Positions 1,249-21,763 are shown, counted from the stretch's first letter. The stretch: DNA of 64,000 bases from Ramazzottius varieornatus (GCA_001949185.1 BDGG01000002.1:1795826-1859825), one strand, 5' to 3'. Notes: generated by a model from the sequence alone, not told the origin. Translations and numbers: made by a program.

Positions 1249-2325
1249 ATGTCGGGTCGTCGTTATGCACAAGACTCTATTTGCCTGAAGGACGTTCTCC
1301 GTGGTCTCGGTGAAATCTTTTCAGAGGATAAGGTCGATGTCGATGAAGTGAAGAGTCTGCTACGCGCCTACAAGAGCAACCCCAAAGACTGGCGAAAGTA
1401 CTGCACATGGGATCCAGCCAGGTAATATTGACTTCCCCTTTCGTGAATTATGGCCCTGAAAGTTTGATGTATATTGCAGGTACACGAGGAACCTGCTGGA
1501 TTCGGGCAACGGCAAGTACAACGTCATCATCCTGTGCTGGTCGGAAGGCCAAGGCTCAGCCATCCACGCTCATGCCAATTCCCATTGCTTCGTCAAGGTC
1601 ATGGACGGCCAGATTCTCGAATCTATGTACGCCTGGCCCGAAGATGACAACGAAGAGGCACCTATGCGCATGTTGAAAAAGACCTCAGTCAATGTTGACG
1701 AAGTCTCCTATATAAATGGTAACGAGAACTGTGTTTTCGTTGACTACAAACGATCAGTCAAAAATATGCCAACGAACGACCATTCAATCGTTCAATCAAT
1801 CAATGGAGAAGAATGATTTTGGTTGTGTAATAACATTCAGTCGGCCGGTGGCGCACTCTACTAACCCATTGCGTTGAAAGCATGCGCCACTTGGGAAATC
1901 AAGCAGATTTGTCAAGGATACTTTTCCTGAGTGGCGCACTTCTTCAGCCAGTAATACCGAAAACGTGCGCCACCTAGGAAAACAATCTTGCCGAGTTTGT
2001 GTACCGAATTCTCTGTTGCTCCTAATTCTCTCTTTGTTCGTTTGACTGGGCTATCTTCAGTCAACAAACCGATGGTGGCTGAGTGGTACTTTATCTTGCA
2101 GACAGTATCGGGTTACATCGTATGGAGAACCCCAGCCACACTGAGCCGACCGTGACGCTACATGTCTACATTCCAGCCTACGGTGAGTGCATGTGCTTCG
2201 ACGAGCGCTCGGGACATCGCAGTGTCTGTCAGGTGGTCTTCCACAGCGCCCAAGACGGTACCATCGACTACGGCAACGGCAAATCTTCAGCAGCGGAAGG
2301 AGGCTTCGATCGCATGAACGACTAG
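1249..2325 (+). CDS. CDO1: Cysteine dioxygenase type 1; exons 1249-1421, 1480-1718, 2102-2325
   Basis: Spliced product has YKSNPKDW, RYTRNL, CWSEGQGSAIHAHANSHCF (HxH plus crosslink Cys), IGLHRMENPSH (third His) and LHVY (crosslink Tyr). GT-AG introns keep the frame. Confidence 0.95.
1840..2012. repeat. Intronic palindromic repeat, two units, in CDO1 intron 2
   Basis: Cores 1848-1856/1882-1890 and 1931-1939/1965-1973, each pair 25 nt apart. Right arm ggaaaacaatcttgccgagtttgtg is shared with other copies. Confidence 0.85.
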
Positions 2326-3600
2326 CAGTCGGCTCGCTCAATCTATTTCGCCTGCAGGCTCTAGCTCACTTCTGATTTTTTTCCGCATAACTCCGGTGCG
2401 CTGTCATAGCCTTTGTCACCTTGTTGACGGCAAGAACTTGTTGTGGTACTTTCTTCAGTTTTATGCGCAAGGACATGGCCGACTAATCCATTGCTGCTTG
2501 TTTACAGATGCGCCACTTCCCAGAGGCAGTGGCGCAGGAGGATTATTTTTCCATCTTATCTTTTCAGGTTTTAGCTTTCGTTTACAATCATACCATGATG
2601 CTGTATACATTGGTAAGATACTGTACGGTTTAATGAGACCTTCGACGTCTGCACCGCGAAACTAAACCGAAAATAAACGCTACGTACGGAATTGAATCTC
2701 GCAGATTTGTGCAGGAACAATCTCTCTTCGACGTGCTACTCGTCTTTTCGACAGGCTGAAATTCGACTGGAGTGAAACTGGGAGTTCGGGTCCAACATTG
2801 CGAATGCGGTCTTCGGGAATCCTAGGAGTTGGTTGAGTTAACCCTGAAGCAGCCTTTCTGTCGTTTATGGGAGAGAGTGAAAGTTAGTTTACCAGCCTTT
2901 GGCTTCTTGAACCCTACAAGCGCCAATTTTCACTGCAGAGCGCACAGTGAAGAGAAAGGCAGTGTAATAACCAACTGACAAGGGCTCAAGCCTCTCTATC
3001 TCTGTCTCGTATACGTAGAGTGGACAAACTTCGAAGCGTCACGCTGGACAGTCGACCCGACCATAATTAAAATTTAATCAAAAACAGATAAATGTTCCGA
3101 CAAATTATTAAGCACACCTTCTCGAGCGAAGACAACTGTTTCCGCAAAGCGCTAGTTTTGGAGAGGGCGGTCGTCTACGATTTTTAAGAAATCGCCATCC
3201 AGAGTGAGTTTTGCTGCCATTTTTAAAAATTGCTCGTTCAGCATTACAGGTCGCCGTTTGAAAAAACTATCACTTTGTAGGCGAGGTAGTTATCCACGAT
3301 TTTAGTACTGGTTGCCTTTTTACCAAACGCACGAGTCGAGACTCGAGATAGACCGCTGCAAAAACAAAATCGTGTTTCTGGGTTCACAGCAGCGCACTTC
3401 AGCGTCTTTGGCGTGACGCGCACCAGTACAGTACATTGAAGCAGGACCATTACACTAACATACGGAGCGGTCTTTACACGGGAAACGTTCCCAATCTTCC
3501 GTATCTAATTGTTTCCCGAAGGAATGGAATACGAGGAGACAGTTCTAACTTCGCCCATTTGCTGGACGGGAGATTACTTGACCCACAGACGCTTAATTCA

Positions 3601-4665
3601 TTTTTTTGCGTACAGGTAAATTCAGCATAAAGCAAAGATAACGAAATGCTAACACAAAGCATACAACAAACTACACCACTTGTTTCTGAATATCTAGAAC
3701 AAAAAAGACCTCTTTTAAGCCCCGAGCATGAGGAAAAGTGCCCAAAACACAAGCGGAATTGCCTCTCTGAATATCAATGGAGACTCGTTGGCGAAGAAAT
3801 TCCGAAGATCTTTTCTCTCCCGTTCTATCTCTCATCTTCTTTCCAATTTCATACAGGAGGTCCGTCGCGGCAGGTCCAAAGGTACCGTAAACTTCGAAGC
3901 CAACAGGGCTGAAGAAATACCTCTCTTCCAGGTTGGTGTACCTATCCACTCTCAGTCCTTCGGCTCTTCCCGCGGCATATCCAGCTTTATCGAAGCAGCC
4001 TGCAACATAAGTCTGGCACAATGTATCAACACATGTTACATCCCAAACCAGTGCTTTCCCTTCCTTCCATGGGATCTGGGTCATTCCGTCAGGGCGCTTC
4101 ACTGAGTTGTCCCGGAGGATGCCGTTGGGCTCCAGTATGGTAGGGATCTGACACGACACGAGGGCCCTCTTGATGGAATCATTCAGGGAAGAATGGCGGC
4201 TGTGGCGTCCGGCGGAGTACTTGCAGCTGAGACCGTGACGTCCATAGATGTCCACCTGTGCCGAACACCGACAGGTATGGGCCTCGCACAGCGGAGCACC
4301 CAAGCGTAAGCCGACGGAGATCCGGAGGGCGTCATCGTTAAGAAGATTGCCTAAGCAGGCAGCCGGCAGTGCGTGTAGCCAAGCGCCCGACTCTTTGGCG
4401 GACACAGCGAGCATCCTGGCCTTGTCCAGCACTGAGCTTGTTTCTAGTATTTCAGCAAAGCATTGGTCAGCAAGAGGCTGACTCCAGACGCGCTGTACTC
4501 CTCTGAGGGCAGCTATCGGAGGCTCAGTTCCCGATTGAACACTCCAGCTTGCCAACTCATCGGTCATCCACGTCGAAATCGGCGACCATTCCGGACGTCT
4601 TGCAGAGTAGATCGAGGCCAAATAGACCGGGAGGGCAATCTGCTCTGCTCGGCGGATGCCGACAG
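3601..4665 (-). mobile_element. 5'-truncated non-LTR retrotransposon, CRE-like, with Zn knuckle and restriction-like endonuclease (ORF 3671-4621)
   Basis: GIRRAEQIALPVYLAS, GAWLHALP, LRLG, CRC-x6-GRHGLSC, RH, RPDG, WDVTC and QRGN motifs. Short A7 run on the minus strand at 3601-3607. No RT domain and no TSD found. Confidence 0.8.
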
Positions 4666-5432
4666 ACTATTTTCTCACTAACCTTCCGCCATAAAACCGG
4701 AAATTTCATTCCCAAGTATCTTTGAACACCTGGCTTCATTTCTGTCGGGTCAGAAGTGGGAAGAAATGGAACACCATGACGGGAGAATTCACGCAGTGGA
4801 GGTCGTTTGGGAATTTCGTTCGATATTTAGGAACACGCTTCTACAGAGGGCACGGCATTCTGGAACAAGTAAACTACAGATGGGCAACGAGCAGCGATCA
4901 CATTTCTCTGAAGATATGCCCTAAGGTTAACAATGACGTAAGACGACCGTCTTTATTCAAAATCTGAACGGCTGAAACTTTGCTCACTTCAGAGCGAAAA
5001 CGTATTGTTCACGGAGTCTTCGTTTGCGTTATTCCTTGCTGGAAGCAGTGATGTTGGCATAAGAGTAATATAATTTTGACCTAATATAATTTTGATTCAA
5101 TAACGCCGAGCTGCCGGAGTTCGAATATAATCTTAATACAATATGCCGCGACCTCGGAGAATCTGATATGATGTCAATATATCAACTTGTTTCGTCGGGT
5201 GCCTATTATAATATATTATAATATTTCTGATCCGCGAGTGAACAGAGTAGGGAAACTTTCCTCCTCAGTCCTAACATCGCTTTGGTGTTACCGAAGCCAG
5301 GGAATTTTCCTCCTTAGATACTTTATCATTTGACTAAATCATCAGATCCAGCAACAGATAGATCAAAATTCTTCCAACAAATTATCTTCGGACCGTCGAG
5401 CAAAAGAATCACCGAAACAAATTAGTCATCTA

Positions 5433-5993
5433 CACTAAGTCACATACAGTATTTATCTGTCCACCCCCATCTTCGTTTCAAAACTTCATAACTTATTTCG
5501 CACTAACCCGATTTCGATATTCTGAACGTCTTTATAGAGATCAGTGTTTGATCTTTACGACCACGTGACTTCCGTAGGGATCAATCGGTAAATCAACTGG
5601 CAGTATCATCCCTACGAACACCTAAAACTGCATTGTTTTCGGCTCCGAGTTGCGGGTGCTGATAGCACATCACGCTTGTTACTATTAAGTAGCGCCAAGA
5701 TTAAGCTTTCACGTAAGCCCATGTGAGAAAGTTTTGAAATTCTGCGGAAAAAGTTTCGTTGACATGAGATACCTACATGCATCTTTTGCCGAGAACAAAG
5801 CAGTTTTATGTTTTCGTAGGAATGATACTACCAGTTGATTTGTTGATTTATTCGTACGGAAGTCACGTGGTCGTAAAGATCGAATACTGATCTCTATGAA
5901 CACGTTCAAAATGTCAAAAATCGGGTTAGTGCAAAATAAGTTATAAATTGTTGAACAGAAATGGGGGTGGACAGATAATTATGGGGCTCAGTG
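5433..5993. mobile_element. Tc1/mariner-type MITE nested in the hAT element
   Basis: Degenerate inverted arms of about 200 bp (5433-5643 vs about 5788-5993). Ends CACT...AGTG flanked by TA at 5431-5432 and 5994-5995. Confidence 0.8.
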
Positions 5994-8680
5994 TATGCCA
6001 GGAAGATAAGCAGTGTTACGCAGACAAAGCACTTTTCTTTCCAAATGGTGTCCAGCCAGTCTGTTCGCTTTCGCTATGGTCGATAGGGTGGCAATGGCGA
6101 AAACGCGCTCCGGCGCACTCGATGCAGCTGGAATTGCCAGTATGTCGAGCGCGAGGCGACTCAAAAGAGGGAACTTTCCGCTTGCAAATATCCAGAATTT
6201 TTTCGGATTGCTGTCGAATTCGTCTGTCGAACACATGGGTATCTCCATGTTGGGCTGAATCTCCAGTTCGACAGGAGACTTCGAAGCAACCGTTTCACTT
6301 TCAGCAATGATGAAGAGATCGAGTTTGTCGTCACGACCGGAAGTTCTTGCCTGCGGTTCGACCGCACTATCCCCATCTCGATCTGTACATTGAAAAAACC
6401 GTTATGAAAGATCGAGGAAGCAGAAATGCGTTGAGCGGTCCGCACCTTTTTCTACTTCAGTATACCACTCGGCGTTCTTAATCGCCAGCCATCTCGAAGC
6501 TATGCTTTTGTCTCCGGCAGTTAGAGTGAATCGTAGCGTCTTATGGAGGAAAGTTCCGACCAAGTAAGTGGCATCGAAGTTTGAGTTTAACTCGTTAATA
6601 GTGTACCCGAGGACCCGATCCAACTCTGACGTGATAGCCAATATCACCTGCATAGAACTAGCTTGGTAATGAAAGCTCGTTTCAGCTTACAGAAGAAGGA
6701 ACTTTCCCGCTTGAGGTTTATCTGTTCGAATTGGTTCTCCGTCCCGTAATCCGCGAAATCAACTCAGAGTAGTGCGACTCCAAATGGCGAACCAGACCAT
6801 TAACGGAGTAGTGCACGCGATGAATGGTAGCTGTCTTCTCGGCGCCGAAGTCATCTGTCACCTGCAAAAACCAACCATAAGTAAGAAATCAGGGTGAAAT
6901 TTCTGTGGCCAGACTTTTGTTACCATTATTAAAGTTTATTACCGTATTGAACTTGTCGAGGAGCTTGATGATGAAGCCTACAGTCACCCATTCACCCGGT
7001 GTGAGGCACCGAATTTTGAGGTGCTTCGACATGATGTCCTGCACCGAGTCTTTAAGCTCGTAAAGACGCTTAAAGAAAAGCAGTGTGGAGTTCCATCGAG
7101 TGGAGACATCGACAGTCAGGGTGAGTTTCGTTTTTTCTTGAGCTCTCCCGTGCGATTGTTGACTTTCTAACGGTGTTGACAATTTTCCGAGTCTTGGTCA
7201 GGACAGGTTTCAGCAGAGTATCCTTCTCAGATGCGCGAACTGCTGTCTGAAGACGGTGAATGCTGCATGGGTGACGGTTGAATCTGAAACCAAGACAAAT
7301 CTGATTAGATTTTGTATTTCGTTCGAGATTTCAAATCAAGAGCGTTCCCCCTTCAACCCACCTTTCGGTGAACATCTGTTCACATTCGTCCTCGAAGCTC
7401 AAGTATCGATCGATTTCATGGTCAACGTCCACATCTTCGCTGAAGTCTTCCTGCTCGACCTGTACGACTTGCTCTTCCTGCTCGTCTACTTTTTCGAAGG
7501 CACCGTGTCGAAGGATGAGATCTTTGTACGCGGCGACTATATTCAACCCATTGTCAGTCGTAACAGCTGACACTTTCGAAGGGGGGGATTTCCCAGCTTT
7601 TCATGATTTCCATGGTTAACTCGTTCACTCTAACCGCCGTACGTGGAGGTGGGAAAGAACGACAGGCGATCGTCATGGAATGCATGGCCCTGGTTTCTGG
7701 ATCGTAAAAGCGAGCAATCATTCCAAGGAAGGACTCTGTCATGCCCTTCTTTGTCCAGATGTCTAGCGAACAGAAGCAATCAGCGTACGACAAAAAATTC
7801 GCACAGTAACCAGTGTAAAGGTAAAGCAAGCATTTACCCGCGGCAAGCGCAGTTTTATTCGCGCGTCTCAGGACGGCTTTCATCTTGGCCACCGGCAGTT
7901 CGAACACCTTATCCATTTCAGTGTTGATGGCGTATCTTCCGATGGTAGGAGCGCGATGGACGTGCTTGAGAAACATACGCTGTGTTTTAGACGTTTGTTT
8001 TTTTCTCAGAGAGTGGGAGTGGCTGTAGTTTGAAGACACCACAAGGCACGTTCTCGCAGGATTGTTCGGTATCTGAAAATATGAAACATAAACGCAATAC
8101 AGTATACGTTACAGTAAACGGGAAGTCCTCTCTAAGCAAAGAATGTAGGTTGTACCTGCGACTTCCCACCAAATATGGATCCGACGACTCGGACCTGATT
8201 TGGGGTTGGAAAAACGTCTTTGCACTAGTCGAGCGCACATGCTTCTCCGCCGTGACTTTACGAACTCTTTCAGTTTCTTCGAACTCGAGGAAGACATCCT
8301 TATGGTTGTTTCTCAGATGGCTTACAGCATTTCCGGTATGTCCGTCTGGCGTGACCACGTATGTACAGGCAAGACAGGTTGTTGTTCCCTTCTCCCCGTC
8401 ACTCACATAGAAAGACCACACCGTTGATTTCTTCTTTGGTCCACTAGAACGCTGGCGCTTCACAAGTGGCTTGGTGAATAGGGCTAACAAGAGAGACACC
8501 GACGCCGCTTCATCGTCGTCAGACGATTCCGATCCTTCGTCAGAGCTGACGATGTCGATGATGGCTGGACTGACTGCACCACCCTTCGTCACCTTCCCCC
8601 GATTCACAGCGGTCTTTGTCGGCCGCTCTCTTCTACTTGACGGTGGAGGAACTCCCTTCTTTTCCATATCCTCATACTGT
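5988..8680 (-). pseudogene. hAT transposase pseudogene (BED finger, DDE core, hATC domain)
   Basis: VWSFY..CLAC..HLRNNH (BED finger), SLDIWT, VTTDNGLNI, DVSTRWNST, FPLLSRLALDILAIPAASSAPERVF. Split over several frames by introns and frameshifts. Confidence 0.85.
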
Positions 8681-9487
8681 CCTGCAATTTCTAAAGAAAC
8701 GACACACAAAACATTCGAAAGCGCAAAACCGAACCTGGAAAAGCAGACAGTTTCGCATCCAGCAATGAGCATTGCGAGCATGCAGGTGGATCGCCGGATT
8801 CATGAACTTGCACCAGCCAATCAAACGAAGTTGACAATCAATGTATAGCCCTTACCGCTGATCAATGAACGTTGATGTGCAGGTGCGTGATGCATTACGA
8901 TCCAACCCAACAGCGCACTGTGCAGAGTCGCACGCTCTCGCTTTGCGCAAATCAAGTCTTATTTTATTCAACCGAAGCCGAAATCGCATATTAATAATTT
9001 TAATATGGAGCGCCGTGCGATTTGTTTTTAATATAATATATTCAGCCCTGGCTTCCATCCAATTTGATACTAATAAATATCCTGCTTCTTTCGAGGCATC
9101 TAATAAATGTTAATACAATATATTAGATGCAAAACGCATCTAATAAGTTCTAATTTAATATAATATTCATATATGCCAACATCACTAGCTGGAAGGCACT
9201 TGACCGTCAAGGTTTAGGTTGTTTGCATGATGGATCCACACTGTTCTTCCACAACCTCCGCGACGTCCGAAGGTAACCCTTCTATCCAGCGGTAGCTGCC
9301 GCCCTGAACGGTGTAAGCGTGAAACTCGGGAGCGGTGAGTCTTGTGGTAAAAAATTAGCGGGCAAGGCTGATTGCTGCTTTGGCTACAAGACCTTCATGC
9401 AGAGGCACCGCCCATAGTTTTACGCTCACACCGTTCAGGGCGGCAGCCACCGCTGCCTCTGTCTCTGCTCACCTGCCATCCTTGGAG

Positions 9488-10345
9488 ATGCCTGGGAAAC
9501 GGCGATATGTACAAGCTCATCCTAACATGGAAGCTGCAGTAAGTGCTGTTAATGATGGAATGTCCATAACGATGGCTGCCGAGAAGTATCAAGTATGCCG
9601 AGAAGTATCACAAAACCCTCGGTAACAAAGTGAACGGGAAACACGGGAAGAAGGTCGGACGTCCAGACACTTTCACGCTGGAAGAAGAATCGGAAAACTC
9701 CGAAACCCTCGTCCGAATCCGAAAGGCGAACGCCCTGGCGAAAGGTGAGGATGAGTTTTCTTGATCTCGTTCTCGTGTGAAGGGGCAATAAGCCAGATAT
9801 CAAACATGAAATGCGCTAAAAATAAACTTCCGGTTGATTTTGCACCAAGGATACCCTTGTCAGCGGTGTTGTTTTTTCCAGCCATGAACAGGGCTGGGTT
9901 CACCGACCAATGGCACCGGAAAATCCTTCAGAGAAATCGCGAAATTTCTTCACGGGTACTTAGCGCATTGAGCTTCAAGAAGTCCAGGGAATGGACAGCG
10001 AAGCGCTGCGAAGACTGGCTTTCGCTCCTGCAGAAGCTGAGTGAACGAGGATTTCTTGATGATCCTGAAGGAATTTGGAATTTGGACGAGTCGGGATTCA
10101 GGTTGGCGGAGCTGTACGACAGAGTGTGAACGGTGAGAGGCGTGAAGGGAGCAGTGGGATACGTGAAAGGGACAGAAAGTGACCGCGAGAATATTTCTCT
10201 TGTGGCTATGGGGAATGAAACTGGAAAGATGCTGCGACTGCTTATTATCTACAGAAGAAAAATGCATATTGAATCACATTTCCGGGACACCCACCACGCC
10301 TGCTATGTAGGCACGAATTCCTCGTACTGGATAACCTCCCCTTAA
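9488..10345 (+). pseudogene. pogo/CENP-B-like (HTH_psq plus DDE_1) transposase fragment
   Basis: MEAAVSAVNDGMSITMAAEKYQV (psq-type HTH), KKSREWT, IWNLDESGF. Stops and frameshifts present. Related to the copy at 32893-34861. Confidence 0.75.
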
Positions 10346-10919
10346 TGTGCGCAACGCGAAGCACGCCCCTCGCTCCAGGTATAGCGCTATAGACCTGGCC
10401 CATCCATCACCCGAAGCAGAAAAGTCTGCCTTATTTTCTGCAGCTGCACTGCCATCCAGACATTCGCCGGTGATTTATTGTCATCAGTGTGTTCCCTTAC
10501 CATTTACTCGTTAGAGAACGCATGGAGTCATTTTTACTGTTGAGACATGAAAAGCGATGCGACTCGACACCCAAATTTTCGATTCTGGCTTGAAACGCAG
10601 TAATGCATGGGGAAGAGTAGGATTTACGACGGAGCACGAAAGGCTGCAGCCAAACTGTAATACAATATGTGGCTTAATAAAAGTGACAGGTTATAATTCT
10701 CAATGGGTGAGGGCTTTTGCCTACGCCGAGTCGATGTTTCCTAAACTCTTGGGACAGGCTGCACAACACAACAATTTCGACCCACCTGCGCAGCACATGA
10801 ACAAGCTATTGACACAAACGGACTTCTTGATAATCTGCTCATCGCTGGGACAGCTAGCCGAAATTGCACACGGGTGTCGTACCTACAATACAACAAAAAA
10901 AGACTGTAGCCAGGTTTAC

Positions 10920-11555
10920 CGCTTTTCGCTGACAGAACTCAACGTGCCATGTGCAGTATTTGGAGGCAGCAGTGTGAGTTGACCATAGTGTAAAATGTTC
11001 TATCAATCAACAGCTAAATCAACTTCAGCTTTCATCGAACACAGCAACAAGGTTATGTCGCCGATAGATTTTGTTAATTTTTTTATTACTGATTAGCGCT
11101 GATGGTGTATTGCATCAGATTATCGCCAGGTTACGAGATCTTTCTGCTCTCCAGCATCCCCTGCTGTCTTCGTCCCCTGTATCCCCCTATATCCCTCTGC
11201 CTCTGTTTACCGAGTAAGTGCTTGGTTCAAGCCTTTGACGCTGGCAAACCGTCTGTTTCTTGCAGGCTTGTTGAAGAAGCCTCGACTTGCCCCATTATCA
11301 CCTTAATCGCCCTTGTCGTCTGTCTGGCCTCTTCAGTCGCCGTCTGTTCTGCTGCTGCTACCTGTTTTACAATTTAATTCCTAGTAAAGCGTGACGTCAT
11401 CCGATCCCACTCCAATTAGCGTTCAGACCGTTGTTCGACGTTTTCGTTATTATTGCTCTATGCACATTTTACACTATGGTCAGCTCACACTGAGGGCAGC
11501 CTCCGACAAGCTCAACATGGCCTGTCCGACGAACAGGATTGTCACCGAAGTGCCT
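10920..11555. repeat. Degenerate foldback or inverted-repeat element
   Basis: cagtgtgagttgaccatagtgtaaaatgt (10970-10998) is inverted at 11464-11492 with one mismatch, and weaker similarity extends outward. No clean TSD. Confidence 0.5.
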
Positions 11556-11641
11556 GTGGCGACTCTCCGTGTTATGTTAAGTCATGTTATGTTAGGCAAG
11601 CTTGTGGCAAGAGAGCCTCTGGGTGTTCCCAGCTTCCCAGC

Positions 11642-12662
11642 TAGTGATGTTCTAATATGTGATTATGGCATTTATATAACAAAAATGAATATCCGCCGTC
11701 CACCAAAGTCTTGATAACTTGCAATTACTATAGTAAAACCTCTGCCTGATCTAATAAAATATTACTATACTAGGACTCCTGTGGGTTTGGTATTAAGATA
11801 TATTTTAATAAAGGAGAGCCCTCCAGTAGATCTTAGCACACGGTATAAGAGGCATCCGTGTCAGCAGAACAGAAGCCCTACTAAATATTTATTCGAAGAA
11901 TCAGAAATGTTTAGAAGAACACTGTAGGTTAAAAACTGTGGGTTTAAAACTGGATTCGCTCGCGGCGGCGGCCCGGGACTCTCTAACAAGCTAGAGGACA
12001 AATGATATATTTTTTCGTAACAGTATCAATGCCTGTACTACAGCTTGCACCGTGGACCTGCACTCTGCAACATGGCGGTTTAGTGTGTCGCGCTATGTGT
12101 AGGTGCATGGTGTACGCGTATGCATCTGCATTAGCTCCTCCGTGCTGGTGTGGTAGAATCATTAGGATCTGGTGCACTTCGTGAGGCGTGGTCGTACACG
12201 AAAAGGCAGTCCCACAGTCTCGCAGTCTTTTCTGAAATGGGGGCGGAGCGCACACTGCGCACTGGGAGAAAGCATGCGCGCACTATGGGAATCACGTGCT
12301 TGACGTCAGATGTGCCAGCCACTCAGAGCGAGACTGTGTAGCTGGTATAGTGCGCTGCCTTTTCGTATAGCTATAGGTCGTACGCCGCATAACCATCAAA
12401 CAGCGCACACGCATTAGAATTTAGCAAATCAACCGGCTTTTCGAATCAGCGGTAGTGTTACGGGTATCAAAATGTATTTTATTACAGGTGATAAACATCT
12501 TAATAATCATAAAATATTGGACCCTGGTTTCAAACTTCTAACATTTTAATATCGGGTTCCGGTATCCAGCTATGTTTACTAAATACCACTAAATATAGTA
12601 GACCCTGAAACCTTCTACTATCATCTACTTGAATAAAATATTACTATATTAGAACATCGCTG
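11642..12662. mobile_element. Non-autonomous hAT element (MITE)
   Basis: TIRs TAGTGATGTTCTAATAT and ATATTAGAACATCGCTG. TSD TTCCCAGC vs TTCCCACC (7/8). Confidence 0.8.
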
Positions 12663-13819
12663 TTCCCACCTGTGGAAGCCTTGCAAGACATCGTGCCAAG
12701 GCTTACACAAGTTAGTTCTCTCTTTTGCTTGTACCTAACGGTCTTACTCTTGATTGGCTCATGTTGCTTCCCCGTGTTACATCCTGTTTCCGTGTTCCCT
12801 TTACGCCCTGAGCTTGCTGGTGGCATCTCTGAGAGGCTTGTTGAGAATAGGGTAAAAGTCTATCAACTTCGGCTTGATTCCTCCTGTTACTTGCTAGAGC
12901 TAGTTGTCAAGCCTCGAAATAATAGACCTTCTGGCCTGGATCGGTCGTGAGTGGTGAAAGAACCTCGTCCAGCGAAGCCTAGACTGGTGAGACTGTTTCC
13001 TGTTGAGGAATACCTGCGGTCTCAGGGCGAGAGCCTCGTTGTCTGTCGGAGCAGACCCGAGTACTTGTCGAGTAACACTGAACTTGCAGGAAGAACGATA
13101 GCTTTCTAAAGGCGTTACGTTGACTTTGTTAACAGGATAGCGACCAATAGATTTCGGGGAGCCATTTCGGAATCCGGAGGTAGACGAGAAAAAAATCGAG
13201 GTAGTAAGAAGTGGTATGTAGGTACGTGCTGATCATGAAGAGATGAGAAGAAAACTGACGGCATCTGCCTGTAATTGTATAGATCGTCGGTTTTCAAAGG
13301 TTCGACGGCGGAAGCAAGAAGTAAGGCTTATAATGCCCTGGGCACAATTAGAAATGTTCACTTTACCATATCGGAGATTATTGCCTTTGATTCATAATAA
13401 TTTCGTTTGACGTCACTGGTTTGATGTACGCTACCTTTACTGGAGGGTTTTCCTACGAAAAGTATGACTTGTGATGACAGTGTTCCGACTATCAGTGCCT
13501 ATGCATATCGCAACACGTTTTTCGTCGGACGTCTCTCCGTAGCCCATCCACGGACAGCGTTCGTTTCATTGATCTGTTCGCGGAGCAATATATTCTCCTG
13601 AGCATTAGTCTCATAGGAACGCCTCTCTTGAGGATTAGTTTCACACGAACCTTCCAAATGTCAGCATTACGCCGTGGAGCGAGCTACGGTGCTCTACCTA
13701 GCAATACTCGGTTTTGCGAAAAAGATGGTGGAACACAGTAACCTCCAATGTTACCGCAGCAGGCTGGGAAAACTTCAGGCTTGATCAAGAGCCTATGTCG
13801 AGGTAATGGGGCAGTTTAA

Positions 13820-13862
13820 GTTTCCGGTCACGGGTTTCCGGTCACGGGTTTCCGGTCACGTG
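13820..13862. repeat. 14-bp tandem repeat (GTTTCCGGTCACGG) x3 upstream of LRRC58
   Basis: Read directly; the last copy ends in CACGTG. Confidence 0.8.
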
Positions 13863-14656
13863 ATCGCTGGATCTTATTTCCTATGGGGGATTTGGGGGTG
13901 ACGCTAGCAAAACTGTTGTTTGGGGGATGTTTTGGGGTAGGACTATACCAGATTTGTTTCCGTGGGAGAAGGAATCGTTATAAACTTTTCTTCCTCGTGC
14001 ATTCTTAAGCCTTGATTCGCTTCAGGTGTGCCCGACGTTGTAAGTGAAACTGCAGGGCGTAGACCAATGCACAGTACGAGCGCAAAATATTTTCAGTCTT
14101 GCGTTCTAGACCTGCATTATGTGACCAGAAGAATGTCCCATAACGCATTTAACGCATTCGAAGGAGAAACGCTTTTCCGGCAGGTACCTCTACTTCAGTG
14201 ACTTGGCGGAACTTGAAGCCGGCATGGTAACGCAAGTTCGACGGTACTGCACCGTCACGATCAGGTTTTCGCTGCGTGCTTCGTAGTTCTCACGAGTGTG
14301 AGCTGATCGATGATACCATCTTGCAAGCTCTGTCAAAAAAATGTGAACGAATAGCTCCCAGCAAAATTCACACGGTTAACTTCAACATACTCTTCGCATG
14401 TCTACAGCAACTGAAATCTTTACCGCGGTGTTCGATATACAACGCTCGTGCGTCAGACACTGAACCATCTACGAAACACCAAGGCCTCTCCAAGCCTTAC
14501 TTCCACCTGTCTGCCATCAAAACTTTGGAGGATAGGCTCTTCGAGACCAGCTTTGAATTTGAGGTACTGTGTGCTCTTTTTCTGATGTCTGTTCTGTACT
14601 GTAACACGCTTTCTGAATTATTCTGTGCGAATTATAGGCCGAGGTACTGTTCGACG

Positions 14657-16191
14657 ATGGCGTCCGATTGTCGTCCTTCGACCTCGCGAATGGACTCTAA
14701 CGCTTCCTCTTCCGGAGAAGAGTCGACCGACCACTGTCACGAGTTGGATTACTCACATTCGGAGCTGGAGTCATTTGAGTTGACCTTCTCTAATTTCTCA
14801 CGCCGTGAACGTAGTCGGGTAGGACGCGTCTCGTTGTCCAACAACAGACTACGTGTCCTCCCACGCAAAATTTCTCTCTTTTACAACATTCAACAACTGG
14901 ACATCTCGGGCAACCAACTCGAATCCTTGTCTTCTGAAATCCTTAAGCTTAGCCAACTGCGTATCCTGGTGGCCAAAAACAACCGTCTGACGGCTGAAGG
15001 ACTTCCGAAAGAACTGTATCAACTAACGCGCCTGGAACAAATCAACCTGGCTGGCAACCCTCTCGGCTCGGTGATTCCCGATGTTCTTACGCTTTTGCCA
15101 AGCTTAACCTACCTGCATTTGGGCGGCTGCGGACTCGAAGAAATTCCTCGCACCATCAACAAACTGGGTAGCCTCGAGGTACGTTGAAATTGACGCAACG
15201 TCATAGGCGAACCTACAGTCGAGAAGAGTCAGTGTTGGGCCAGATCGTTGTATCAAATGGCGCACGTTTCTGTTGTACTTGACCGAAAGTAAGCGCCACT
15301 TGGGAAAACGATCAGGTTCACATCATGTGCTCACGCCGCTGGTGTAGGAGAAAGGCAGACAAAAGTCAGACAAGGACACAAGAAGAAAAGGCATGCATGG
15401 GAAATCACAATGTACTGGTGTGTCTTCAGGAAGATGTACACAAGTGTGTTACAGGTATTGTATTTGGGTGGTAACCAGCTGTCGGACGTCCCCGAAGAAC
15501 TGGGTTTCCTTCCATCGTTACAATCCTTGCAATTGAACGATAACCGGTTGGAGAACTTGAACCCATCTATCGCTAATCTATCTCAGCTGCGTTCTTTGGC
15601 TCTCCACAAGAACCGTCTTTCGTCCTTACCTAGTGACATTATCAAGCTGTGCTACCTCCGAGAACTTTCCCTCCGCGACAAGTAAGTACCACCAACTATC
15701 GTTTCAGAAGGGTCGCACTGAACAGAAGACAATGAGCAAGTCGGTGTGATTACAGTCCGTTGGTGCGTCACTTTGTCCGCTACCTAATTTACCAACCAGC
15801 CACTTTACAAGAAATCGCAGCGCGCGTCATCAAGGCTCATCGAATAAACTACGAACGTTGGTTGCCGAAGAACCTCAATCAGTACCTCAATTCGGCTCAT
15901 CAGTGTGTCAACAACCAATGTCGAGGTAAGCTCGCTGCTCACAACTTACGTAACTAGCGGTGAAAGACCTGATTTTGGGTGGATCAAACGGATTTCTTTC
16001 TTCTTCCTTTAGGTGTATATTTTGATTCGCGTTTCGAACATATCAAGTTCGTGGATTTCTGCGGCAAGTACAAGGTGCCCTTCTTGGAGTATCTGTGCTC
16101 CGCTCGATGCATGCCCACAGCTCCCGACTACTTGGAAACAGCACCAAACCCCGCCGAAGCCGACTTGCTCAGAAGAGTCTTGCTTGGTTAA
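14657..16191 (+). CDS. LRRC58: Leucine-rich repeat-containing protein 58; exons 14657-15178, 15455-15681, 15756-15925, 16013-16191
   Basis: Tandem LxxLxLxxNxL repeats, then LSLRDNPLV, BC-box-like PATLQEIAARVI and the family C-terminus SAHQCVNNQCRGVYFD..FVDFCGKYKVPFLEYLCS ending RRVLLG. Confidence 0.92.
15235..15320. repeat. Intronic palindromic repeat, one unit, in the first coding intron of LRRC58
   Basis: ATGGCGCAC 15257-15265, 25 nt, AAGCGCCAC 15291-15299, then ttgggaaaacgatc. Confidence 0.8.
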
Positions 16192-16773: not shown

Positions 16774-19772
16774 TCAGGAAAATGTCAAGGTCTGTCTGTC
16801 CTTTGTCTTGTCGGCCACAATAACTTTCCTCAGTAGCCAATACGTCGTCATAGGACCTTTTCCCTTCACCTGTAGGAAAGCCTAATTAATACCATAATCA
16901 ACCAGAAGACATTACGTCGATGTGAATGTTTGGCGCCTAGCTTCTTGACATGAATAGTCTCTTTCAGGTGGCAACAATGTATGCTGTATTGCGGCGAAAC
17001 TATCCAGAAACCTCCCGCCCCATAATCAGTATACACGTCGGGTTGTTCTTACCTGAATCTCCCCGCGCGACTCCATTTCAAAACATTTGAAATACCGTAG
17101 AGCATCATGGGTGGTCGTTGTTATGTGCACTCGCAAAGGTTCGCCGTGCGACTCCATCCGGGACGCCGTGTTGACCGTATCCCCAAACCTGCAAAAGATA
17201 CACAAGGTTGCGCTCGTCCTTGATCGTGGATAGCGGATGTTTCTTTTTGGTCAAGTCTTACACGCAGTAACGAGGCATTTTTGTCCCGATTATCCCCTAA
17301 TACCAACCAATCAAAGAAGAGTCGTGAATGTTTATTGATATACGGTTGGAACAATGTATCTGCAGACGAACAAAAGTGAATCCCTACCGCGGCACAGGGA
17401 CCTGTGTGTAGTCCGATGCGCATCTTCAGGGCGTAGTCGGGTTTGTGGGGTAGCCGAATTTGCGCCACATCAACGATTAACTCCAAGGACATGCTGGCTA
17501 CCTCGTAAGAATGCCTGTAATGTACATCATTGTGACGCACGAATTTCGCGTCTTTCAAAACAATTTGGTCCCACTTGTTGCCGTTTCGCTCAGGAAGTCC
17601 ACTGACACACAGGTAAGCATCCCCTACGAACACAGACGGATCACGCCGTGACACACGAGCGCGAAGTGACGGATTCATTATTTATTACTACCGATGGTTT
17701 CCACTTTATAGACGTCGTAAAGTTCGATCCGTCTGTCCATGACTGAAACATATATAGCTCATGCGCATACCGTAGTACAGTGCGTAGCAAAACCTGCCGA
17801 AAAGGGACAAGCAATGAAGCAGTGGAACTTACTGGTATAGAGTTTATTCAGGGTGTCGACAATCTGCAGCGGCGTTGACGTCGAACTCAGCACTGTAAAC
17901 TCCACGATATCACTGAAAAAGACGGTGACTTGATCGTACGATTCGGGTTGGATCACTTCCCGGTTCTTCAGCTTGTCGGCGATCTGACGGGGAAGTAACT
18001 GATTTAACACCGCTTCTGCTCGCTTCTTTTCCTTCATCACTTCCTCGTTTTTCGATTGCAGAATAGCCGCAAAACTCTGGATCTGACCAGTGATGAAATT
18101 CAGTAGAACAATGATGGTCGGCAGGAGGGCCAGTGCCAGTAGGAGGATGAAGAGGTTGGAACCCACGGTTTTGTTGGCGTCATAGATGGCCTGCTCCAAG
18201 TTCTTCCTGATTCTGGCGGAAGTGTTCCTTTCGATGTCCCGAAGGATGTTTTGATAGTTGGTCATTAGGGCGTACCAAAAACGCTCTCTTTCTATGTCCC
18301 GGTGGGTTAGATTGTTTTGATCGATCAAGTTGCGCTCCACAGTGATGTTAGCTTCCAGTGACGAGCCGATGTAGCTCTGGACAAGCATCTGCTTGATTGA
18401 GGGTTCGTACTGCAGGCTTTTGTTGAGCAATGCTATGCCTTGGGATCGCTTATTCTGATACCACAAATAATTTGGTAATTCCATATGCCCTGTATGAATC
18501 AAAGACGGTAAAATGGAACGTCGGCAAAGGATGTTTTCCCTTACTGGCGCACCCTGACAGTCCATGGCTACGATAATGTGCGCCGCTTAAATCAAACTAG
18601 GAAATGGTTGGCATACCGTTTCCGTAGAAGATGGTGCCGCACGATCGTTCCGCCGCAATGTATTCTTTGCCCATAATGAACAGATGATAACCCACTAAAA
18701 GCTGCCATCTCTGTTCGGTCGCCTGGGACCCAATTACCGAATCCCCAATCCACTTCAGAATATGGGTGATAATATCCGTGAAAAAGTCGAGCTGTAGCTC
18801 TGGCGTCGAGCTGTTGACCATGATTCGGTTGATGGCAATCTGGAGTTGCAGATCTTGTTTCTGCAGGAAAAAGTGGTCCTCCGGTTTCACATCGGGCCAG
18901 CTCACTAGGGCCGCTAATGACTCGTCCACTGTTTTTCTCCTGCCGGAACGAAAATATGCATCGATACACCAATTAGGGACCAGGTAAAGAAACCGAAGAG
19001 AACGTTGGCCCAAGTGGCGCACGTTTCCGACCAACAACATCTGAAAAGTGCGTCACTTAATCCAACACTCGAAACCGACATGCTCGCTGCTCCAAGTGGC
19101 GCACACTGCCAACTGATATCGACAGAAAGGTCCGCTACTTGTTACAAGAGTGTTACATGTTCTCTTCACAGATCTAAAAATTTCAATTTTTCCGTGACCT
19201 TTCGTAAATAATGCTTTGTTTACTCACCTGAATTTGACTGCAGCAAGTAATTGCTCGTTCACCATACTCAGATAAAACGTAGTCGTCCCTCGCTCTAGTC
19301 CCAGGGCGTGGACTACATCACCAGCTTGAATGGCAAATTCAATCTGGTCCTTGAAATCGCTTGCGAACTGCTGTTGTTGGAGAGCTTGGTGGACGCTGAT
19401 GCCAGACTGAACCACTAGAATAATGATGGGAATAGCGGCCATGCCTAGGATCTTGATCAACTGCATTCGCCGACCCTTGGTCGTTCGTGGATCGTCCACA
19501 CATTTACCCGCAACTCCGGCCAGTCGCGACAAGGAACTGCGACCGGTGGCGATCGACCCCGTGTCATACTTGCCAACTTTGAAAGCGTAGTCGGAGACAG
19601 CGCGCGAACCGAGCGTTGTCGAAGACCCATGTTGTCTTTCTATCACAATGGATGGCTTCGTATCGCTGTGGTGAGTAGCGTGGCCGTGAAGGCGCGTTGT
19701 CCCGCCATTTACGTGCGCATGCTCCGAGGTAAGGTCACCAACTCGGTTGAAATCCATCGAATGTAATTTCAT
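16774..19772 (-). CDS. NIT-domain transmembrane guanylyl cyclase, multi-exon
   Basis: TM segment, NIT-like helical domain ([11 protein letters not shown]; GKEYIAAER), second TM, coiled coil, then cyclase motifs [63 protein letters not shown]. The E and C specificity residues indicate GTP. Confidence 0.88.
18990..19150. repeat. Intronic palindromic repeat, two units, in cyclase intron 1
   Basis: Cores 19014-19022/19048-19056 and 19096-19104/19130-19138, both with 25-nt spacers. Confidence 0.8.
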
Positions 19773-20139: not shown

Positions 20140-21763
20140 TCAAGTGGAAAAATAATCAAATGTTTCGCCAGTCCGATGTTTTACACTGGCCTTGAACACT
20201 GCTCTCGCCGTCAAACTTCTCTTTGCTTGAAAGCCTATCCAGTAATCGTCGGAAGCCTCGTCATTACCCCAAGTATGGACCAGCCATTTGCCCATCCTTA
20301 GCACATCTTCTGGATTAGTGGCGATGTTGACTATCGGACTTTGAAAGGGTAGTTCCACGAAAATGACTTTCCCAAACGAGCTTGTTAGGATACCGCTAAA
20401 GTACACATCATCGACCCACAGCTCTTTAACCCTCAAGGACTCCTCGTACAGCGTCCCCACCATGTCCCAGGTGAACAGGTAAGCGTTGCCGTAACAGTAG
20501 GGAGGGTACACTGCACCTGCGTACTCTTCCTCGGCGACGTACCATTTGAAGAAAGGATCACGGGGTGCTAGCTCGTTGATCAGGACGTTGGCGCAGAAGA
20601 AGGTGCGAGGTGGGGGGCTGGCGTGGAAGCGGAGGAAGAAGCCGGTGAAGGCGTCAAGGTCTAGAACGACGTCGTCGTCCGTCTTGAAAGCCAGAGGATA
20701 GGATGTGGCGTCGATGAAGCAGGAAGTAAGGTTTTGTAGGAACTTGAGCGCGAAGCGGTGTTTGAGAGTTAAGTTGCGGTAGGAGTCGATAAAGTCGCCT
20801 TGGATAATGTCATGGTAAGCTCGACTTTCGGAGAGAACGTTTGCTTGGATGGTCTGGCTGAGGGAGGAACCCAGGACGAAAATGTTGACGGCTCGGTTAC
20901 GTTGGAGAACTTCCCTGCTTGCCCATGTTTCCCGCACCTAAAACAGTGGAATGTAGACGACAAACCACCACTCGCGACTCGTATCAAGCAAACGAGAATA
21001 ACTGTACTTCTCAACGGTTTCACTTGCTTGCTTAACACATTCAAACTAATACTGTACAGATTGCCAAACCAAGCGTACGGCATCTTTGTCTGAAGTGGCG
21101 CACGCATCCAGCTAGTATCCAGGCAAGCGTGCGCCACTTGGAAGACGAACTCGACCCAATCATTGTTCCAAGTGACGCTTTACCACTGTCATCGGCTGGT
21201 AGGGTGCGCCACTTGGGATAAAAATCTTGCACATTTTGTCTGCCCATCTGCCAGCTATTGATACATATGTATCTACAGATTTCTTTTAAAACAGAAAGTA
21301 CCTTTTGACGAAGTTTGACGTTTTGTGCTGCCGAATGTGTGTAGATGATGAAACGTGGTACGGAGGCGTTGTTCACAAGCACGACTTGACACGAAATGAA
21401 ACCGTCTGTCAAAAGCTTCGTCTTGTCCTCGTTAGAGACTCGCTCCGGCTGCTGTACGATGTACACTTGGGTTTGGTTGGTAGCATTACGCAAATGCCGC
21501 TCCAGACTATTAGCGTCATTGCTCCTGAGGACGCACAGCTGCACGTCTAGCCTGCTGGCGAACGCATTGCGGCTGCGACACTCCAGAAACGGCAGGGTAG
21601 ATAATCCTACGGGAACGAAGTCCGAATACTTTGCTGGCTCTACTTTCCTGACAGACAAGTCACGATGTTGGACAGTCAATCGAGTGATGGTGTATATGAG
21701 CGAATAAAACACTACGAAAGCAATGGCGAATGATAACAAGATGATTTTCTTACGGGCCAACAT
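20140..21763 (-). CDS. GT31 beta-1,3-galactosyltransferase-like protein; exons 21763-21302 and 20937-20140
   Basis: Type II TM anchor; RETW, DIIQGDFIDSYRNLTLK, KTDDD, KWYV, YPPYCYG, DDVYFSGIL. Confidence 0.9.
21065..21250. repeat. Intronic palindromic repeat, two units, in the GT31 intron
   Basis: Cores 21095-21103/21129-21137 (25 nt) and 21172-21180/21204-21212 (23 nt). Confidence 0.8.

Follow-up and report, generated by a model that had tools for sequence, protein, structure and literature searches.

Why should the gene for an enzyme lie next to the gene for the receptor that has this enzyme destroyed? The question is raised by a stretch of 64,000 nucleotides from the tardigrade Ramazzottius varieornatus (contig 2, 1,795,826-1,859,825, of an assembly of 55.84 Mb in 200 contigs), hereafter called the window. 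LRRC58 is the substrate receptor of an elongin B/C-cullin 2/5 ubiquitin ligase and, under cysteine scarcity, causes CDO1, the cysteine dioxygenase, to be ubiquitylated (PMC13156300, PMC12589099, bioRxiv 10.1101/2025.09.23.678073), and in the window CDO1 (1249-2325) and LRRC58 (14657-16191) are consecutive genes on the same strand with 12,331 bases between them. In two further tardigrades this pair is annotated as a single protein, so the linkage appears to be inherited and not an accident of one genome. We therefore propose, with a probability of about 0.75, that the head-to-tail adjacency of this orthologous pair was inherited from a parachelan ancestor and that the arrangement in Ramazzottius is derived. 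The proteins themselves are ordinary, and what is new is the genomic arrangement, whose linkage is shared by three parachelan tardigrades.

Two other tardigrades annotate CDO1 and LRRC58 as one protein

The LRRC58-specific C-terminal region was used as query and gave about 100 orthologues, almost all of which were 214-615 aa long and contained only leucine-rich repeat (LRR) domains. The protein XP_055334048.1 of Paramacrobiotus metropolitanus (584 aa) carried CDO_I and LRR domains in one model. Its residues 11-209 were colinear with the three CDO1 exons of Ramazzottius up to the stop codon, then came a stretch of 11 residues, and residues 221-584 were colinear with LRRC58 of the window from residue 2 onwards. 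The same architecture was found in OQV25643.1 of Hypsibius exemplaris (586 aa, CDO_I at 10-170 together with LRRs), which was reached via its membership in a protein cluster represented by a 95-aa fragment, and which is named "LRRC58" at NCBI and "cysteine dioxygenase" at UniRef. The two proteins were colinear over their full length with 63% identity, and OQV25643.1 was also colinear with both genes of the window, its Met222 being aligned to the start codon at 14657. The linker between the two halves had about 40 residues (39 and 37 after VVFH in the 586- and 584-aa models, respectively) and its sequence had diverged. The Hypsibius model comes from the submitter's annotation (PMC5531438), while the Paramacrobiotus model comes from the NCBI RefSeq annotation and is independent of it.

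A single gene model needs both halves on the same strand, in the same order and close together, which means that the order CDO1 then LRRC58 is common to all three species. These species belong to the Ramazzottiidae, Hypsibiidae and Macrobiotidae, which represent two superfamilies of Parachela, and the shared order and orientation is conserved microsynteny within parachelan tardigrades. According to the literature, little gene order has been retained among these tardigrade genomes, and local synteny is rare even between the two closer families. The fused or tightly spaced state would be ancestral by parsimony on the tree (Paramacrobiotus,(Hypsibius,Ramazzottius)).

On this basis, the parachelan eutardigrade ancestor would have carried both genes on one strand, with CDO1 directly before LRRC58 and so close to it that the pair came to be annotated as one open reading frame (ORF) of about 585 codons in Hypsibius and Paramacrobiotus, and it is possibly a shared transcription unit in parachelan tardigrades. 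In Ramazzottius, whose state would be the derived one, CDO1 has its own stop codon, LRRC58 starts at a methionine that is kept in Hypsibius, and the spacer would have grown to 12.3 kb, of which nested transposons make up at least 8.3 kb.

Neither gene was named in the supplementary material on the transcriptome of Paramacrobiotus, and we found no citation of the three tardigrade accession numbers in the literature. Exon-level fragments of CDO1 or LRRC58 with 73-90% identity to Ramazzottius (P0243, P0258, P0002, P0244 and P0245) were also seen on ENA/JGI metagenome contigs, of which one spans 64 kb, and these fragments probably derive from other tardigrades. In the Ramazzottius-like fragment P0258, CDO terminates at the same stop position as CDO1 of the window.

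CDO1 and LRRC58 of the window are intact single-copy orthologues

The exons of the window, those of CDO1 included, were searched singly, and full-length LRRC58 was represented in the queries by the public protein GAU91844.1. CDO1 was intact, with three exons on the plus strand, GT-AG introns and a TAG stop codon at 2323-2325. Exon 1 (1249-1421, start codon at 1249; Pfam CDO_I, E 1.2e-9) begins colinearly with the Hypsibius and Paramacrobiotus proteins, exon 2 (1480-1718; E 2e-25) contains Y58, R60, H86, H88 and C93, and exon 3 (2102-2325) contains H140, Y157 and the LRRC58-contact patches 1-3. Together the exons cover positions 11-55, 58-134 and 136-170 of the 170 positions of the CDO_I profile (PF05995), all above the curated cut-off, and all three matched solved CDO1 structures (E 1e-23 for exon 2, and 2e-14 and 2e-8 for the other two). 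Alignment to these structures indicated that the iron ligands H86, H88 and H140 and the substrate residues Y58 and R60 (human numbering) are identical, and that both residues of the Cys93-Tyr157 crosslink of animal CDO1 are present (C93 in SHCF and Y157 in LHVYIP). By its motif, an AATAAA at 2672-2677 on the plus strand, 347 nt past the stop codon, is a candidate polyadenylation signal of CDO1.

LRRC58 was likewise intact, with four exons on the plus strand and a stop codon at 16189-16191. Exon 1 (14657-15178) and exon 2 (15455-15681) encode leucine-rich repeats, both with Pfam LRR matches, exon 3 (15756-15925) encodes the BC-box, the Cul2-box and the first zinc-binding cysteines, and exon 4 (16013-16191) encodes the C-cap, the remaining cysteines and the C-terminal VLLG. 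Human LRRC58 (9t7v_B) was the sole significant solved-structure match of exon 3 (E 1e-9; the other two listed had E 0.19 and 0.76), and LRRC58 was again the sole significant match of exon 4 (E 7e-10; one other listed, E 0.13). For exon 3, 111 relatives were found among 1.84 billion representative proteins. The top solved-structure match of GAU91844.1 was also LRRC58, with 260 bits versus 186 for the next LRR protein; its residues 54-380 aligned with residues 21-352 of 9t7v_B (E 4.6e-76), in the same linear order as the nine repeats of the human protein. In the BC-box and Cul2-box, which lie between the repeats and the tail, PATLQEIAARVIK and LPKNLNQYLNSA of the window aligned with human PPTLLELAARTIK and LPGNLLRYLGSA, and this segment was conserved in the alignment of animal orthologues. 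Five zinc-binding cysteines and FVDFCGxY were invariant in 13 animal orthologues, the C-terminal VLLG was invariant or nearly so, and the C-cap reads VDFCGKYKV in the window versus VDFCGKYRL in human (human residues 316-324). The genome search found CDO1 and LRRC58 each in a single copy. Thus, the two genes are single-copy R. varieornatus orthologues and ordinary members of known families.

The public record of LRRC58 (GAU91844.1, locus tag RvY_04023) starts at 14585, which is 24 codons upstream of 14657. The sequence upstream of the gene (13136-14656) is not repeated, and it contains a candidate 74-nt intron of the 5' untranslated region (UTR) at 14564-14637 (GTACTG, a polypyrimidine tract and TTATAG). 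This candidate intron encloses the ATG at 14585 of the public annotation, whereas the Hypsibius methionine aligns with the ATG at 14657. The LRRC58 frame is also stop-free for 142 codons upstream of 14657 (14231-14656), with a chance of about 7e-4 at the local base composition, and 14585 is its only internal ATG. This stretch gave no Pfam or Atlas match and had no similarity to the linkers of the relatives, so it was set aside as coding sequence and treated as untranslated; it may be a product of chance or a relic.

The interval is largely filled with nested transposons

At least 8.3 kb of the interval (3613-10324 and 11538-13135) recurs elsewhere in the genome with 73-92% identity, and about 4.0 kb (2326-3612, 10325-11537 and 13136-14656) is not detectably repeated. 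In the first block (3613-10324), copy junctions indicated the insertion of one element into another. It contains a hAT-family transposon on the minus strand (5047-9186) with 15-nt terminal inverted repeats and the 8-bp target duplication GCTGGAAG. This transposon contains a hAT dimerisation domain at 5988-6248, but its transposase reading frames are broken; a 570-base foldback element is inserted in it at about 5428-5998, and it is itself nested within an older element bearing a pogo-like helix-turn-helix. In the second block (11538-13135), another repeat encloses a short non-autonomous element of hAT-like type (about 11631-12661).

The ORFs of the interval matched only transposon domains of Pfam and no host gene was recognised there, nor was any tRNA or Rfam family found within these 12.3 kb. 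The linker peptides of Hypsibius and Paramacrobiotus also had no counterpart in the interval. These results bear out the preliminary description of the window, which had been made from the sequence alone. It had reported the two genes as intact, consecutive and co-oriented, which the exon models and the Pfam and structure matches now support; it had estimated about 7.7 kb of transposon or repeat sequence, which genome-wide copies raise to the amount given above; it had recognised no host gene between them; and it had noted a BC-box-like segment and a Cys-rich tail in LRRC58, both of which align to human and are conserved in orthologues.

Two further observations concern the mobile elements. 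Many short, internally deleted derivatives of the hAT transposon, which keep only its ends (5047-5371 and about 8700-9187), are scattered genome-wide with 82-89% identity, a pattern suggestive of an earlier miniature-element burst in a genome regarded as transposon-poor. A 316-aa ORF at 3671-4621 on the minus strand, located within a repeat, has a copy on contig 7 with 92% identity and no Pfam match, and it probably belongs to an unclassified mobile element. Downstream of LRRC58, the neighbours are a gene with a guanylate-cyclase domain (17121-18565, minus strand), a galactosyltransferase (20140-20937, minus strand) and a cytochrome P450 (24640-25296, plus strand).

Residues of the degradation circuit are mostly conserved

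The residues by which CDO1 and LRRC58 contact each other have been named from the structure of the complex (PMC13156300), and the circuit extends beyond mammals, since lrr-2 (Y42G9A.3) regulates CDO-1 protein levels in Caenorhabditis elegans (PMC13158863). As judged by alignment, eight of the 11 named contact residues of CDO1 are identical in Ramazzottius (R57, G82, R141, E143, H147, D168, R170 and H173), with Q169 changed to E, and so are three of five in LRRC58 (Y172, R243 and Y322), with R323, a backbone contact, changed to K. Patches 1-3 are thus essentially kept, while patch 4 has changed on both partners. The genome also contains at least seven cullin loci and two Skp1_POZ loci of the Skp1/elongin-C type, as candidates for CUL2 or CUL5 and for elongin C. 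The two proteins would be expected to work like their counterparts in mammals and C. elegans, CDO1 docking on LRR4-9 and the C-cap and LRRC58 recruiting a cullin together with elongin B/C.

The preliminary description had predicted that the circuit operates in this invertebrate. The conserved residues make this plausible, but it is no novelty, because the lrr-2/cdo-1 circuit of C. elegans has been published (PMC13158863).

Compared with the human CRL2/CRL5-LRRC58 complex with CDO1 (PDB 9T7V), both tardigrade proteins are clear orthologues. CDO1 keeps the iron ligands and the Cys-Tyr crosslink residues, and LRRC58 keeps the repeats, the BC-box, the Cul2-box, the zinc-binding cysteines, the C-cap and the C-terminal VLLG. 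Unlike in human, patch 4 (Q55 and Y56 of CDO1, and E238 of LRRC58) has diverged and Lys8 has no aligned lysine in Ramazzottius. The genomic arrangement also differs: the genes are neighbours in Ramazzottius and form one gene model in two relatives, whereas we take human CDO1 to be at 5q and LRRC58 at 3q, on different chromosomes. The C. elegans pair is similar in that the same enzyme and regulator are found in an ecdysozoan invertebrate, but the worm has two separate genes (presumably cdo-1 on X and lrr-2 on III), for which linkage or fusion is unreported.

Inherited linkage, fusion or neutral leftover

Several points weigh against inherited linkage as we propose it. The adjacency in Hypsibius and Paramacrobiotus is inferred from single gene models and is known there from proteins alone, and gene predictors do merge close neighbours on the same strand in compact genomes. 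The baseline for the retention of neighbours among the three genomes is a qualitative statement of the literature. The transposon-filled spacer of 12.3 kb means that close spacing is dispensable in Ramazzottius. At the protein level, both partners differ from human in contact patch 4 (in CDO1, Q55 is replaced by P and Y56 by A, and in LRRC58, E238 by R), and no lysine of the tardigrade CDO1 aligns with Lys8, the ubiquitylation site in human, the nearest being K14. Whether the models of the two relatives stand for a genuine fusion, as protein or as read-through transcript, or for very close neighbours merged by two predictors is in our estimate close to a coin toss.

If they are true, the tardigrade ancestor would have made CDO1-LRRC58 as a single polypeptide of the "Rosetta stone" type, which was kept in Hypsibius and Paramacrobiotus and was split in Ramazzottius. 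We consider this a serious possibility whose odds fall somewhat short of even, and it would refine inherited linkage rather than exclude it. Fission would have required a stop codon after the CDO1 tail and the use of an internal methionine as the LRRC58 start, with transposons filling the former linker. In the window the two genes are not one frame, being interrupted by the TAG at 2323-2325 and the 12.3-kb spacer and annotated separately. In the relatives, two independent annotation pipelines arrived at the same architecture, with nearly equal totals (586 and 584 aa) and linkers (39 and 37 residues) in spite of the diverged linker sequence. Paramacrobiotus has no methionine at the position homologous to the LRRC58 start, yet the acidic, serine-rich N-terminal segment that follows shows protein-level conservation among all three; the parsimony argument given above also speaks for an ancestral state that was fused or tight. 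On the other hand, the relatives were seen as protein models only. Hypsibius has a methionine exactly at the position of the separate Ramazzottius start, as would be expected if LRRC58 were also translated separately. Mammalian LRRC58 and CDO1 are inverse in stability (PMC13156300), which is hard to fit with a covalent 1:1 fusion. No such fusion was found in any other animal by the LRRC58-orthologue and CDO-half searches, and the AlphaFold2 model of the Paramacrobiotus protein (mixed alignment) was poor, with a mean pLDDT of 65, a pTM of 0.54 and a badly modelled CDO half, a quality insufficient to reveal whether the CDO domain docks on the LRR domain.

The pair could also be a neutral leftover, that is, neighbours since an early tardigrade that have never yet been separated, with the models of the relatives being artefacts and the linkage having no regulatory meaning. 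This is conceivable, with the odds leaning against it. It would agree with what Ramazzottius tolerates, namely 12.3 kb of spacer laden with transposons, a stop codon of its own for CDO1 and a candidate signal for polyadenylation, and with a rough, uncomputed estimate that, among the roughly 13,000 neighbour pairs of such a genome, chance should yield a few with related functions. The genes are also unlinked, as we assume for human and C. elegans, in animals in which the circuit works (PMC12589099 and PMC13158863 for the function). But the pair has been retained in three families although local synteny is reported to be rare even between the closer two, and the same pair was merged by two different pipelines. 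Nor is the pair an arbitrary one, as CDO1 and LRRC58 are mutual top co-evolving partners by phylogenetic profiling (PMC12589099).

An ancient CDO1-LRRC58 block shared by all animals is very improbable, since it found no support outside tardigrades: arthropods, nematodes, cnidarians and sponges supplied about 100 LRRC58 orthologues, which had 214-615 aa and no CDO domain, and among proteins of 321-1022 aa the search gave no further combination of CDO and LRR. The CDO half of XP_055334048.1, used as query, retrieved only nematode CDOs with unrelated extensions. A broad LRRC58 alignment was also used as query against metagenomes and gave 80 non-tardigrade loci, closest to sponge, coral, copepod, mite, springtail and nematode. 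CDO was near LRRC58 in none of the 80, which is weak evidence because the loci were mostly 1-3 kb long and transcript-like (11 had at least 2 kb upstream and 21 had at least 2 kb downstream). We infer that the linkage is specific to tardigrades rather than pan-animal.

Inherited linkage within parachelans thus changes what the preliminary description had suggested. Its ancient microsynteny holds within parachelans, where Hypsibius and Paramacrobiotus have single models, but not across phyla, where neither the 80 loci nor the protein searches gave a second case. Its co-regulated module may survive in the relatives as a possibly shared transcription unit, but it gains no support in Ramazzottius, where the genes are 12.3 kb apart, with an own stop codon and AATAAA for CDO1 and a transposon-filled spacer. 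Its caveat of chance adjacency in one genome has been largely removed by the same order and orientation in the two other species.

Significance of the linkage

The LRRC58-CDO1 axis was defined only in 2025-2026 as the way in which animal cells tune cysteine catabolism, and the three LRRC58 papers do not mention synteny or fusion of the two genes. Linkage that is conserved across an animal clade is independent evolutionary evidence for this partnership, as the possible one-protein state would be, and such evidence could have predicted the interaction between CDO1 and LRRC58. If the models of the relatives are merged neighbours, the finding shrinks to lineage-specific microsynteny.

The tardigrade pair resembles Rosetta-stone, conjoined or read-through genes in that the partners are separate in most species and form one ORF in the Hypsibius and Paramacrobiotus models. 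Unlike in Rosetta-stone proteins, the tardigrade fusion is known from gene predictions alone, and it would join an enzyme to the very receptor that has this enzyme destroyed, which is unusual. If the fusion is true, it would be a natural experiment: a permanently tethered substrate conflicts with the inverse stability seen in mammals, so that tardigrades would need another way of regulating this step, and RNA interference is available in Hypsibius exemplaris. In that case the Ramazzottius locus would clearly exemplify gene fission or spacer expansion by nested transposons in an otherwise compact, transposon-poor genome.

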